Notes under the pieces: model-generated
What the model saw: the letters and a program-made list of their open reading frames with translations, nothing else
What the model was told of the DNA's origin: nothing
Databases searched by the model: none
Translations under genes and position numbers: made by a program
Shown: piece by piece, positions 9,981 through 59,035 of the stretch
Layout of the letters: every line of letters starts with the position of its first letter
Position numbering within the stretch: the stretch's first letter is position 1
NCBI GenBank assembly: GCA_025201805.1
Contig: MU619245.1
Coordinates: 319,160-383,159 of the forward strand
Source: Parasitella parasitica NRRL 2501
Taxonomy: Eukaryota; Fungi; Mucoromycota
Length of the DNA: 64,000 nt
Direction: 5' to 3'

Positions 9981-10095
9981 TCGATTGGTACTAGTTGAGT
10001 CCGACTACTTTTTTGGTATACCCGACTAATTACTTATTAAATCCGACTAATTATTTATCAAACTCGACTAATTGCTTGTTAGTTCGACTAATTTT
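9981..10095. repeat. Degenerate tandem repeat, 20-21 bp period, ~6 copies, core YCGACTAATT
   Basis: Cores start at 9981, 10001, 10022, 10043, 10064, 10084. Confidence 0.8.
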
Positions 10096-18498: not shown

Positions 18499-20135
18499 AT
18501 CAGCTGTCAATTACTATAAAAAGCACAGGCTCGAAATAGATATACAACCGCTTCTTTAACACATTCCCCTTTTTTCATTTATTTTCTTGCCTCTTTTTCT
18601 TGTACAAACATTTTTATTTTATTTTTCTTGTTAGTGTGTGATGTATTTTATATAAAAGAAAAACCAACATTTCATCTTCCTTATCCTCCTCATTCATTCA
18701 TCAGAAAAAATTATAAAAAAAATCATATAACTCAAAAATAAAAAAAGTAAGTGATTAAATACCCAATTTTTTTATCATATCATAGCATAACAACAGCACT
18801 GCAGAAATATAAGATATGCCAATTTATAAACCACCTTCTTTAATACGACAAAATGCTTTTATATTAGAAGACGACCAAACCGAAACACCCTTGGATTCGG
18901 TAAGGACAAATACAGTATGAATTTTTCCGTTTTTATGAACATAAAGCAGGTGTGCCGTATTTGTTATGAAATAGGCGCAGATGATAACCCATTGTTTCAA
19001 CCATGTCAATGTCACTCGGCAACATATCCTACCTTGTAAGCTACTTGTCAGCATTTATCATGTATGTGGACAAGAAAAAAGCTAATTTCTACAAGATACA
19101 GATATGCACATTCAAAGTGCTTCAGTCGTTGGCTCAGCGAGCACGGATATCCGCAACAATGTACGAAATGCAAATCAGTTTATGCAAAAGCACCCAGTAC
19201 AGTCATTCTGAGTAAATGTCCAGCCCAGATGGCATTTCATTAACATTACTCACACACTCTGCTAGAAAATCGTCGTAAATATGTAATATCGCTCATCATG
19301 TCATTCATTGTATTATACTCCATTTATCACCTTATTTCTTCTTGCTCCACCTTTGAAGAAATACCAGATACAAAATTATACGCTGATTTTGGTGCAGATA
19401 CCTATAATAATGTGCCCGAGATCTTGTATGCTCCTGTAAAGTGGTAATCAATACTTGCATCATATATTCGCTTTAACAATTTGTTCTATCCAATATAGCG
19501 CATAAGCAAATCCTGTATAAAATCAAGTATTCAAATACATTGCGTCTCTATTACAATGATTTCTATTTTGCTATTTCTTTTCTGTTAGTAATTTGTTTTT
19601 CCTAATACAAAAATACCCTTAAATTGCACGATCATTAACTAGCATTTACATAGCCATCATTTTATTTCTTCACTAGCATTTCTTTTAATAAATCTCCAAT
19701 GTCAATATACGCTTCAAGGACCCGAACACCCATGATTGTTTCGCAAGGATTATAGTGATACAAACAATTTGATTTCACAGCATGCCCTCTATTTTCTCGG
19801 ATGCATACAAGCTCATGATTCCCTTTGTGTAAGTTATCAAGGGCATTCTATACCTTAATCTGCAACAGGAATATTTGTCAAAGCACAAATAAGTCAAATA
19901 CACTATTATATGTGCGCATCTGTAATCATTATTTGGTTGTCGTACGATCTGTGATTGTAATGTTACTCATCACAAATCATTGATTGACCGAAATCCAATG
20001 ACGATACAACGTTTGTCCGGGTAAGACTCGATCTTTAAATGTATTTCACCATCTTCGCTTCTTTTTCCTTTTTGTTTAGCTTTTTGTACTTCTTTTTCTT
20101 TTATCTTTTTTTTTTCATACAAGAACATATACACA

Positions 20136-21056
20136 ATGCCATATCCTCCTTATGAGTCATATTTATCCAATCTTGACTCACTTGTTTTCGATTCACCGAG
20201 CAATGTTGCTCAATCAGAAGAAGATGTTGCCGATGAGTTAGATTTATGGGTAAGCAAAAAAAACAAAAAAAAATTGATACCCTGTATTAATAATCAACCT
20301 TGATTTTAGAGTAACGCACAATTTACATTTGATGTCAAGCCTGGTGTTGGCATTTTTGATGAAGAAAAGAACAAGTCTACCCCCAAGAATACTGCAAGTA
20401 GCCCTACTAACACGTCTGATGCTCAATTTGAATCTGTTTCTGGCCTAGACCCTGTTACCTATGATGCTCTTGTAAACTATCTTGATTACGAATTACCTAG
20501 ACAACAACAACAACAAGACTCTCTCGCTACTCCCAAAACGGCCAAGAGTCCCTCTGTTACTACTGCAACTGCAACTGTTGCCGTCAAGAAGCAACGTATT
20601 CAACCGCGTCCATTGGCTCCTGCTCTACCTGTTTTGGCTCCTCATGTTGCACCTATTGCTCGCCAAGTATTAATGCCTAAACCCCCTATTACTAACGTCA
20701 ATGCCAACCTCTTGTCATCTTTATTGGCTACTGCAACTTCATCATCTACCGTCCCTGCTGCTGCTGATGCTGTTATTCCATCTACTAAGAAAACGACTCC
20801 TGCCAAGAGAACAATAACAGAAGTCGAGCAAAACTCTGATGAACCTACGCTTCCTGATGAAGATAAGCGCCGTCGTAATACAGCTGCAAGTGCTCGTTTC
20901 CGTGTAAAGAAGAAGATTCGTGAACAAGCCATGGAACAATCTGTGCGCGAAATGACTGAAAAATCCGACAAGCTTCAAGATCGTGTACATAATCTTGAAA
21001 CAGAGATTAAATACCTTCGTAGCTTATTACTTGAGAAAGCGGCTTACGGTCAATAA
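20136..21056 (+). CDS. bZIP transcription factor, MetR/Cys-3/Zip1 sulfur-regulator type
   Basis: N-terminal DELDLW/SNAQFTFD across one intron; basic region EDKRRRNTAASARFRVKKK followed by a leucine zipper. Confidence 0.85.
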
Positions 21057-21097
21057 GTATCCAAACAAACCAAACAAACAAGCAAACCAAACCAAAA

Positions 21098-21364
21098 ATT
21101 CAACATTTTATAAATATTCAACATAACACACTTTTATATATTCAACATACAACCCCCCCCCCCCTTATCTCTACATATTCAACATAACCACTCTTTCCTT
21201 CGCCAAATTCAACATTATATCATTTCTTCTTTTTTTTTTTNNNNNNNNNNGTATCATATTTCAACATTAACTTTGTACTTGTAATTCAACATTGCCATAT
21301 ATTTTCTCAACAAAAGCTTTCCACTATTACTCTTTATAATAAATAAATCCCCCTAATTCAACAT
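21098..21364 (+). promoter_or_regulatory. Array of 8 TTCAACAT motifs in the bZIP 3' UTR (putative cis-element)
   Basis: ATTCAACAT at 21098, 21116, 21140, 21177, 21207, 21284, 21356; TTTCAACAT at 21259; spacers unrelated. The function is inferred. Confidence 0.6.
21241..21250. other. Assembly gap (N x10)
   Basis: Ten n characters following a poly(T). Confidence 1.
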
Positions 21365-22116
21365 TATTAAGACTGATAGGCGTTTTTAACTTTGTTTTTA
21401 CTTTGAATTTAAGATTTTGAAGGAATGAAAGCAAGCAACTATGGTAAAAATCACTAAGCAGGCGTTTTATTTGAAAAACATTTTGCTTAAAACTATCTGG
21501 ATGTCAGCTTTGCCAAGTTTTAGAAACACTATCTATAATTCTTATCCTTAACATATACGATATCGAATTATTGCTTAGATTCTGGACGACAAGGCTAACA
21601 TCTGACGAACCTTGTGGCTCTACTCCAATGCAAGATATCAAGTAGATTCAATCACATTCAGTCTTTCATTGAACTACTGCTTTCAGCAAAAATTTGATCT
21701 GTAGGTGCGTTCGGTTGTGTAAACGACAGACAACTTATCAATCTCATTCCAGTTCATGTTAATATGTGGCTAGACGCTCTTGATTCTTTCTTTTACGCAA
21801 GCTTGTGTAATGAAGCCCACGTTCAGTTGAGAGTTGTTTGCTGATAAATTACAGAAAATAAAAAGTAATAAAGATAGTAATTTAACCATGATAGACTTTT
21901 ATGAGCAAACTTTCGTTTGAAACTTACTACCTTTCAAAAATCATAGCTTGTTGTTGGTTGTTCGAAGATCAGTTAGCAGACAATTGCAAAAGGGATATGA
22001 ATATATTAATAGACACTTTTGCTTCTTTGAGACTTCAAATATGATATATAAGAATATAAATTATGCTATCTTTGCGTATTTTTCCAACATTTTATTTCTT
22101 AATAAAAGTTTTCATA

Positions 22117-23030: not shown

Positions 23031-24746
23031 TTATAAAGTTTCCATTGGAGTATCTTTCAGACCCTACAGCAGCGATAAAAATTAGTATGACAACTCTCAA
23101 CAATTAATTACTTCGTTCGACATACATAATTCACATAATCAGGAGTTTCACAAGCTTCGTATTCCTCAATAAGCTCTTGAACGACCCGACGAGAATCATC
23201 AAACTCTTCTAAATCATCGGCAAACGCAGCATGCTTCCTATACTGCTCCAGGAATGCGTTTCTCTTCCTTAGTTTGTCATATTGATCACAAGTGCGTCTA
23301 AACAATGAAGCGATGCTTGTATGATTTGCCAACATCAATCCACTCACACGGTGAGGTGTCTGGACATAGGGCGACTTTTTGGAAAGTGCGACTTGAATGC
23401 TAGCTGGTCCCCAAGGTATAAATGATGCTAATCTTCTCTCGCGAATACGCAACAAGGATTTATGTACATCAGTTGGATCTGCTTCTCCTTGAATAATGTC
23501 TAATACCGAAATGTAACAACTACGCTTTGAAGGCATCGTGCTGACCATTCGGTTTTTGGGCTGTAATAATCGTCTCATCACATCTAATACAGTTGTTTTG
23601 CGAATCGATTTAGCCTATGTGAAAAGATGAATAAACCCATGTGCCTTGCTATATCAATGAATAGTACGTGCCTTTTCGACCTGCTCACTTGAGAATGGTG
23701 TATAAGCAGTTGTCAAGAAATGGCATCTTGGTGTAGGGATTAAGGAAGCAACGATACTGACAAGATCGTTATTCATATAGCCTGGGTATCTCAGTGTTGA
23801 TGTACTAGCTGACATGACCGTAGACACCAACTGATTTGTTTGTTCGAATGTAGGTTGCTGGATATGCAAACGGTCTATAGCAATGCGTGATAATGCTGCA
23901 TTATCAAGAACAACAACACTATCGGCATTGTTTGTGAGTCTTTTTAAGGCGAGCATGCTGTTGTAAGGTTGAACCACTGTGTCAGATACTTCAATCGAGT
24001 CAGGGAAAACTGAATATGTTTGAATCAGCTTCTTTGGATAGCGATCATTGAGCCTCTCTAATAAGAAGGAACCTAAACCAGACCCAGTGCCACCAGCAAT
24101 GGAATGTAGTAGCATGAAGCCCTGTTCCATGCTTAGTCTTTATTTATTAGAATGTTCCGTGCTCCAGCTTACCTCTAAAGAATCACTATTATCAGCCTCT
24201 CTATCTACCATATCCATAATATCTTCAGACATCTTTTCAGCTTGTGTGTATCCATTAGGCCAAATGTTTCCTGCTCCCCCTCCATCCTTTGATGTGAATA
24301 TGTTCTCTGGGTTATACAAGTTAGCAAATGCAGATGCTTTGATGTTATCAATAACCTATGTTAAGGATGTTTGATGAGACTACTGCTAGCGAATAGAATG
24401 CAATATGTGGCACATACTCTTGGTTCAAGATCTAGAAGTAATGCACGAGGGATATAATGCTCATCATCTGCCTAATTCGATCAATCATTAGTTAGTTTAC
24501 ATTAAACGGAGGACGTCATAATAGATACCTGATAAAAAAATACATCTTTTCTGTCGCCACCTTCTGTAGCAAATTCTTCTAAAGTACCATCATTGCTGAT
24601 GCCATGCTCTGAACAAATCTGTCTCCAAAACTCACTTCCGACTATCAAGCGCAGGATCAGTAAAATGACATGGTTCTGTAATCAGGGTATCTCTTACTCT
24701 GATTTCCACATTGTCCAGCTTGCAAGGTAATTATTTCGCGTGGCAT
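23031..24746 (-). CDS. TUB4: Gamma-tubulin
   Basis: [57 protein letters not shown]; last exon [10 protein letters not shown]. Confidence 0.97.
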
Positions 24747-24978
24747 ATTCAAATAAACGATAACGGGTTTAAAAAGCAGAAATGTTTAATTTTTTTAATA
24801 GGAAACCTTGATGTTGTATGTGACGCGCCAGACTATGTGGTATACTGACACAATGACACAATGACGGTACAGCATTCGGTCATAAGAGCTTCTTTTATTA
24901 TTTAGTTTTGATATATTACAGAAGGATGAATGCCTTAATTCCTTAAAGCATATTAGAAATCTAGAAAAATTTACAGTC

Positions 24979-26027
24979 TTAATTATTGCTCTTTTCAGTC
25001 AAATTGTTTTGATAATCATGTAAACGAAGCAAGTTGCGTTCTAACATAGCAACGGTAACCTTGCCAACAGAAGGAACAAAGATAGAAGCCTTGGTCTTGA
25101 TATCATCCTCGAAATTAGCGCATGACGAAAAGTTAATGGCAATAACACCATCTTTCAATAAAGAAGTAGGCATCTTGTATTTAGGTGTAGGGACACCAGT
25201 GATTACAACATCACATAAAGGTATAACTTTTTCAAATGGTACATCGATATCTTCCACTTTATGGTGAGCTAATTTGATGCCGGTACCACGAGTAAAGACT
25301 TGGATGCCATTGACGTCAACAGAATACACCGTGGCACCATCATTAGCAAGCATAGCGGCTAAAGGACGACCAACAATCTCACTGCGATTGATGACAGCAA
25401 TGGAACGGCCATATAAACGATCACCATAGGTTATGACGGGATTATAAACACCGATAAACTCAAGGATCTACAATTTGACAAAGGTCAACTGCAAGATCAA
25501 TCACATACACAACCAAAAACCAACCTTAACACATGCCAGGGGAGTACAAGGGATGATGCACTTCATAGTTTCAGTATCATCCATGAAACGAATATTATGA
25601 TAGACATTGTGCACAAACTTGTGGCAGAGACCTTCGACATCCTTGAGTTCACTAACGCAGCTTTGGAGATACAAATCTTGCTTTCCACCGAAAACGGGAT
25701 AGTAGACCATGATACCATTAACAGACTTGTCTTCGTTAGCTTCGGTAATCTTTCCTTCCAGCTCCAGCTTGGCAATCTTACGCAGTTCAAAATCAACGCC
25801 AGTTTCAGCACATGTCTTTGCAGTCCAGTCAGCATATTTTATAGCAGCAGGATCATCATTAGCGAGGAAGCCAACCAATTTAGGTCTAATGTTGCGTTCC
25901 TTGATGTCTTCCTTGATTTGCGTTCTGCCATTGGAAAATCAGCCGTGATATTCGGGTGTGCTCTACTCCAATAAACTTACCTAAAAGAAGCAGAAACCTT
26001 TGAAGCGAGGATAGTCTTACAAGGCAT
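24979..26027 (-). CDS. MTD1: NAD-dependent methylenetetrahydrofolate dehydrogenase
   Basis: MPCKTILASKV..., LVGFLANDDPAA.KYA.WT, NGIMVYYPVF, KDVEGL, PCTPLA, NRSEIVGRPLAAMLANDGA, GKVTVAMLERNLLRL. Confidence 0.93.
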
Positions 26028-58586: not shown

Positions 58587-59035
58587 TGATCAGATTGACA
58601 CCAAACCATATAAACAGAATGCCATGTACTACTATACAGTTACAGACGAAAGTATTGATTGTAGAGCAAAGATGCAATAAAGTGTAATGATTTTTAATTA
58701 AAAAGTTAAATACTCCTTGTTATTAGTTTTCCTATTCCAGGCTCCTATATGCACATTCAAGTTACATATATTACCAAGGGTTGAATCAAGGATGATGTTA
58801 CGAGCTCCTTTTAACATCGATCCTGTAAACTTGTTTAAACATCAAACGCCTTGGGGAAACAAGCTGCATCGACAGCTATTTACACGATTTTTAAATACTT
58901 ATGATTCAAGCTCTTTACACAAGAAAAAAAGATTTATTAAGATAAAATTATAATATACATAAGTTGAAATATACTTGTCGATTGAGAACAAATAAGAGAT
59001 TTCGAAAGTAATATAGTACAGAAATTCAAGAGGAA

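Follow-up and report, generated by a model that had tools for sequence, protein, structure and literature searches.

The window, by which we mean the whole 64,000-nucleotide stretch of Parasitella parasitica NRRL 2501 DNA analyzed here, carries a bZIP transcription factor gene whose coding sequence is followed by an array of short repeated words. The features of this locus, all on the + strand apart from the unstranded gap, are as follows.

20136–20249, +: bZIP exon 1 (ATG to ...DELDLW), matching the start of database protein P0001
20250–20309, +: 60-nt GT..AG intron, skipped by an RNA contig of run X7
20310–21056, +: coding part of exon 2, with the bZIP_2 domain (PF07716, E 5e-13) and the stop codon TAA at 21054–21056
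21095–21109, +: predicted hairpin 1, UCAAC loop at 21100–21104 on a 5-bp A-U stem
21115–21125, +: predicted hairpin 2, UAU/AUA 3-bp stem
21139–21149, +: predicted hairpin 3, UAU/AUA 3-bp stem
21176–21186, +: predicted hairpin 4, UAU/AUA 3-bp stem; the P. parasitica RNA contig reaches 21185
21206–21216, +: predicted hairpin 5, AAU/AUU 3-bp stem
21241–21250: assembly gap at a long poly-T run, predicted from loose contig ends and ortholog read-through to hide no copy
21251–21258, +: PUF-like 9-mer (U)GUAUCAUA, conserved, just 5' of copy 6; its first U lies in the gap and is visible in reads
21257–21268, +: copy 6, with an imperfect stem (U-U second pair, or a UUCAAC hexaloop on 2 bp)
21274–21295, +: most conserved block, UGUA words plus predicted hairpin 7 (5-bp stem, 21281–21295); core invariant down to Phycomyces
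21302–21315, +: ninth, variant copy, predicted CUCAAC hexaloop on a UUUU/AAAA stem
21338–21347, +: overlapping AATAAA words, possible poly(A) signal
21354–21366, +: predicted hairpin 8, 4-bp stem, beyond the end of the P. parasitica RNA contig (21185)

The host gene was searched exon by exon, with database record P0001 used for the tree. Its bZIP_2 domain contains the basic region RRRNTAASARFR common to MetR/Cys-3-type proteins of Dikarya, and one homolog (P0032) is annotated as "Putative Regulatory protein cys-3". The Cys-3/MetR-like bZIP family is expanded in the Parasitella genome, with five more paralogs (G000 C6, C21, C52, C60, and C205; L099–L103), none of which carries the array. Because these five share the homology on which the label is based, we refer to the host bZIP as a putative sulfur regulator. 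Its protein has 0–1 cysteines in 11 orthologs and mostly 4–7 methionines, and this near-absence of cysteine is weakly consistent with the sulfur sparing expected of a sulfur regulator. About 175 nt 5' of the bZIP start (19960–19970), we detected the promoter word ATGTTACTCAT, which is kept in the second Parasitella strain and in Mucor circinelloides, occurs as TGTTACTCAT in Blakeslea, and was not found upstream of 14 sulfur-gene loci (five transsulfuration-family genes and nine sulfate-transporter loci); this word, which has no relation to the 3' array, is a candidate for (auto)regulatory DNA binding by a bZIP. ATGRYRYCAT-like, CYS-3-type words were not enriched upstream of these 14 loci relative to 19 controls, and any of the five paralogs could be the activator of the sulfur-assimilation genes. 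Elsewhere in the window, a 21-nt tandem repeat of 3.5 copies lies in non-coding-looking DNA (10022–10093), and the annotation of the second Parasitella strain (L006:8522–11498, against 23108–25900 of the window) presents the downstream genes for gamma-tubulin and tetrahydrofolate dehydrogenase as a single product of 760 aa, probably merged in annotation.

Eight exact copies of TTCAACAT, all on the + strand, start at 21099, 21117, 21141, 21178, 21208, 21260, 21285, and 21357; the preliminary description of this DNA had reported the same eight, giving for each the position of the letter before its true start. The array spans 21099–21364, beginning 42 nt past the stop codon, and an A precedes seven of the eight copies. 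Across 5000 dinucleotide shuffles of the stretch, TTCAACAT never exceeded two copies and no 8-mer exceeded four; in a scan of the 32.8-Mb genome, the bZIP array was the sole non-tandem cluster to reach three TTCAACAT copies, and Tandem Repeats Finder did not call it. The spacers, initially described as unrelated in sequence, include a ~55-nt core block that is conserved among orthologs, and the two to three letters on the left and right of each copy are complementary to each other.

The other three-copy TTCAACAT clusters in the genome turned out to be one AT-rich tandem element present twice, as a near-identical pair (G000 C5:252467 and C67:69612; L001, L005) with three TTCAACAT in ~38-nt tandem units, adjoining a CA microsatellite or gap. 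This element is probably a repeat or mobile-element end, and as a single duplicated tandem element with unpaired flanks, it was rejected as a further array. Two-copy matches elsewhere were also rejected, as they lie in introns, 5' of a start, or on the antisense strand of coding DNA, and looser three-copy matches, judged from the matched text, look like coding or tandem repeats. Among single WATTCAACATW sites outside the array, about 45 of the 93 listed genome-wide were self-paired by hand count, indicating no general bias.

The placement of the array in the 3' UTR was borne out by spliced RNA contigs, of a kind that cannot locate the mRNA 3' end: one from P. parasitica extends to 21185 and covers copies 1–4, and an intron-less Mucor contig (L014) carries seven exact copies plus variants up to 329 nt past the stop. 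The last copy lies directly after AATAAA in Parasitella, Mucor, and Rhizopus. An N-gap within the array had left room for additional copies, and we found none there in orthologs. DNA contigs from three runs read leftward from 21251 as ~25 T and then CT, the left side of the gap in the window ends in a T run, and the second Parasitella strain and Mucor run straight through this point as a U-rich stretch flanked by the same copies, unchanged in order. No single contig spans both sides; because the poly-T reads, the T run in the window, and the ortholog read-through agree, the two sides are very probably continuous with no hidden copy.

Orthologs were called by synteny (UPF0014/RINGv upstream, Pex-RING and Ytp1 downstream) together with a quick tree. 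This comparison of bZIP 3' UTRs across Mucorales, proposed in the preliminary description, revealed that the array is kept in five fungal families, with syntenic orthologs in Mucor, Rhizopus, Blakeslea, Backusella, and Pilobolus carrying 5–10 copies. Exact copies number eight each in the two Parasitella strains, M. circinelloides, and R. delemar, and five in Backusella and seven in Blakeslea, both of which have variants in addition. Counted as U[YCAAC]A sites past the stop, there are 8 and 9 in Parasitella, 10 in M. circinelloides, 9 in R. delemar, 7 in Backusella, 8 in Blakeslea, 5 in Pilobolus, and 2 each in Phycomyces and Absidia, with none past the stop in the orthologs of Radiomyces (syntenic), Circinella, and Umbelopsis; 80 distant metagenome homologs, mostly Dikarya-like, had no array and at most two scattered words. 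Spacers diverge in length and sequence among orthologs, but the core block can be aligned throughout the crown families; it contains two copies and two UGUA words, and its second copy is invariant down to Phycomyces. The array is real, present in mRNA, and conserved. Local changes were also seen: the second Parasitella strain has a slippage duplication in the array, and in Blakeslea trispora (L119:6940–7230), the array is rebuilt as ~5 tandem units of ~45 nt, each holding two hairpins, one with a UCCAAC hexaloop and one with a UCAAC loop, as well as a UGUA word.

Conservation in orthologs supports the earlier view of the repeat as a conserved word, though its arms co-vary around a YCAAC loop, and the unit is better described as a mini-hairpin. 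We hold, with more confidence than doubt, that each unit is a protein-clamped YCAAC pentaloop on a 3-bp stem rather than a linear 8-mer. The second and third pairs are formed at 84% and 81% of 64 sites, compared with 41% and 32% of 152 background sites, a comparison in which the closing U-A pair was used in site selection and the hairpin idea was post hoc for all species except Pilobolus; the fourth and fifth pairs are near background. Shuffling 3' arms among copies within species gave p values of 0.0006–0.03, 3-bp stems occur in 14 of 29 distinct contexts (5.9 expected), and an independent pair counter found 87.6% of cells paired against 67.7% when shuffled, with 0 of 500 shuffles reaching the observed value and 23 double changes against 9.7, although shuffle counts are not true probabilities because the copies are related by descent and duplication. 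Slid registers pair only 25–50%. Seven fully paired arm types were detected (AAU/AUU, UAU/AUA, UUU/AAA, CAU/AUG, AUU/AAU, GAU/AUU, and GUU/AAC), and no such hairpins were present in 40 other 3' flanks (11.8 kb). Pilobolus, fetched after the hairpin prediction had been written down, has at least 3 bp at five of five sites; GUU/AAC occurs there as a new arm type, and a CCAAC loop sits on a stem of 8 bp. About one in five sites breaks the stem; several of the seeming exceptions have loops lengthened to six or seven letters by additional pyrimidines on the 5' side, and copy 6, imperfect in the window, has a perfect stem elsewhere (GUU/AAC in Pilobolus, GAU/AUU in Rhizopus).

Folding calculations assign most isolated hairpins a positive energy (+1 to +4.5 kcal/mol, 37 °C), and within the UTR ensemble their mean pairing probability stays under 0.11, with loops 88% unpaired; compared with shuffles, the Rhizopus UTR folds no better (z +0.88) and the Mucor UTR modestly better (z −2.64). 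Stems this weak would not fold alone, so clamping by a protein is probable, and they probably exist only when protein-bound.

The strongest competitor to clamped hairpins is a set of linear single-stranded WAUUCAACAUW sites for a KH or SR-type protein, with the complementarity of the flanks a by-product of duplicating a few founding copies along with their flanks. SRSF3/7/RBP1-like SR proteins have UCAAC/UCAACA sites, the word is a hybrid of two motifs of the yeast protein Khd1, and the unpaired loops, the marginal energies of the stems, and the dominance of a few arm types (AAU/AUU and UAU/AUA) all fit such sites. They do not account for seven independent complementary arm types, for arm swaps at orthologous copies (AAU/AUU versus CAU/AUG at the last copy, GAU/AUU versus GUU/AAC at copy 6), for a second pair that is never A-A among the 64 sites, or for register-specific pairing that ends sharply past position 3, and we regard linear sites as unlikely.

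The array could also be a substrate for an RNA-modifying or RNA-cleaving enzyme that reports SAM or sulfur status. The tRNA T-loop has the form UUCRANN, which the unit resembles if read with a 7-nt UUCAACA loop, making Pus4, Trm2, and Trm6-61 candidates alongside an m6A or m5C writer. In T-loop substrates of Pus4/TRUB1 and Trm6-61, GUUCNANNC is closed by G-C and sits on a 5-bp stem, whereas the units here close with A-U or U-A, leave a 2-bp stem in the T-loop register with no G-C closing pair, and include CCAAC variants that drop the U55 equivalent. A parallel in architecture is the METTL16 system, in which six hairpins (hp1-6) in the MAT2A 3' UTR resemble the array in being several, conserved, and placed in the 3' UTR of a sulfur/SAM-pathway gene with the first near the stop (PMC10578476), and the host gene here is itself a putative sulfur regulator. 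However, the hairpins of MAT2A exceed these in size, bear UACAGAGAA, and undergo methylation (PMC10578476), whereas the array, set in the mRNA of a fungal transcription factor, has YCAAC loops of 5 nt and stems of 3 bp and shows no structured hairpin with the UACAGAGAA nonamer, no DRACH context, and no Rfam match. An enzyme substrate is thus improbable, more so than linear sites.

Still less probable is a cluster of DNA-binding sites, such as for bZIP autoregulation, or a terminator or chromatin element 3' of the gene, the first of which had been put forward as an alternative. In favor of such sites are the outer dyad symmetry of the word (WAT-N5-ATW), the binding of bZIP dimers to dyads, and a report that CYS-3 binds its own gene (PMC8550094). 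Against this, the word does not match the CYS-3 motifs ATGRYRYCAT, ATGGCGCCAT, or ATBRCGCCATC (PMC8550094), it is essentially absent from the promoters (1 match in 12), and dyad half-sites would not co-vary. YCAAC occurs 79 times sense and once antisense, an argument that is partly compositional and weaker than it looks because the UTR of array-bearing species is only 3–7% G. The near-copy in the sulfate permease 3' UTR, earlier taken as a hint of a regulon, lost its appeal: the site (58961–58973) is U[UCAAC]U without a stem, and no stemmed YCAAC was found in the 3' flanks, some of them short, of the 14 sulfur-gene loci.

Mucorales have active small-RNA pathways, and an invariant 8-mer core could serve as a seed match for an endogenous small RNA (AUGUUGAA...), as was suggested at the outset. 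We consider this highly improbable, since loop position 1 changes from U to C at orthologous copies and the flanks vary in ways that preserve self-pairing rather than a fixed sequence. A non-functional repeat expansion or assembly artefact, to which local slippage duplications (Parasitella strain 2, Blakeslea) and the N-gap might have pointed, is essentially refuted by conservation, as the array is kept in five families despite spacer divergence and is carried by independent assemblies and RNA contigs.

The predicted YCAAC mini-hairpins also differ from other known RNA elements. An Rfam covariance-model scan gave only a chance match (E 6.4), a tRNA scan was blank, and literature searches on the word, on Mucorales sulfur regulators, and on YCAAC loops turned up no account of the element. 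The transferrin-receptor IRE array and bacterial CsrB/RsmZ likewise use short hairpins with fixed loops for multivalent protein binding under nutrient control, but they have CAGUGN and GGA loops, longer stems, and known readers. The Mmi1 DSR array consists of repeated UNAAAC hexamers, whereas the core here is UUCAAC, with an invariant C rather than A at the third position. The Smaug/Vts1 SRE is similar in being a sequence-specific tetra- or pentaloop on a short stem of free sequence, read by loop and shape; it differs in having a CNGG(N) loop on at least 4 bp with a G-C preference (PMC3045596), compared with YCAAC on 3 bp of A-U in a UTR of 3–7% G. The one conserved UGUA-NN-AUA 9-mer beside copy 6 has the length of Puf4/5-like PUF elements (PMC4654594), but its part is an accessory one: UGUA words are frequent in the UTRs of these fungi and leave the array unexplained. 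The array is a previously undescribed hairpin motif within a known multi-hairpin architecture.

The preliminary description proposed multivalent sites for an RNA-binding protein or a small RNA, and of these, a protein is the best reading. Among known classes of reader, Khd1/Pbp2/hnRNP-K-like proteins with three KH domains fit best, a tentative assignment that we judge possible rather than probable. Khd1/Hek2 of yeast is a three-KH protein that stabilizes or represses mRNAs (PMC8783092); SELEX failed for it (PMC3045596), and its sites have been given as YCAACAA/YCAUCAU in a HyperTRIBE preprint (bioRxiv 10.1101/2023.03.17.532881) and as CAUCAUCA and (CNN)6 elsewhere (PMC5916902). UCAACAU is a hybrid of the two HyperTRIBE words, Khd1 sites are repeated and CA-rich with effects on mRNA stability and translation, and KH homologs are encoded here, with three PCBP/hnRNP-K-like genes (G000 C31, C95, and C50) as candidate readers by homology. 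Unlike the array, with its spaced hairpins in a single 3' UTR, the sites of Khd1 are spread over many mRNAs, mainly as CNN repeats within coding regions, and have not been reported to need a stem. As the array is unique to one mRNA and Khd1 is a broad binder, a dedicated reader or a feedback loop is suggested, and a dedicated novel protein fits this uniqueness better than a broad-spectrum Khd1. A stemmed AUU[CCAAC]AAU site lies ~800 nt past the stop of one PCBP-like KH gene (L161, on G000 C31); it may be chance, or fit autoregulation if in the mRNA. The PUF-like word together with a loop match also occurs at G000 C126:48731, C179:28726, and C209:460 (control 0).

We suggest that the G-poor, largely unstructured 3' UTR would act as a landing strip for 8–9 mini-hairpins spaced 15–45 nt apart, each with a YCAAC loop (sometimes with one or two additional 5' pyrimidines), U-A closure, and two more pairs that are almost free in sequence. 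An RNA-binding protein would read the loop bases and the shape of the stem, its binding stabilizing the marginal stem, and many copies would provide avidity or a graded or cooperative response. Together with the neighboring PUF-type site, where a PUF protein on the conserved UGUA-YY-AUA word perhaps acts against or with the array reader, the array may set the stability or translation of the transcription-factor mRNA. Protein binding, the identity of the reader, the output (decay, translation, or localization), and any link to sulfur status are inferred. In its most specific and more doubtful form, this model has a dedicated nutrient-sensing RNA-binding or RNA-modifying protein reading the YCAAC mini-hairpins and switching the stability or translation of the sulfur-regulator mRNA by sulfur or SAM status, an IRE- or MAT2A-like tier that would have arisen in Mucorales and been amplified from 1–2 to ~10 sites in the crown families.

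What is known of sulfur control in fungi concerns mainly transcription and protein degradation, and to our knowledge almost no cis-regulatory RNA elements have been described in Mucorales. Here, a covariation-supported RNA motif forms an array on one mRNA in the genome and is conserved in the tractable, medically relevant Mucor and Rhizopus. Should its reader sense sulfur, the array would give fungi an equivalent of the IRE and MAT2A systems; otherwise, it would still represent a new hairpin-recognition code with unusually short stems.
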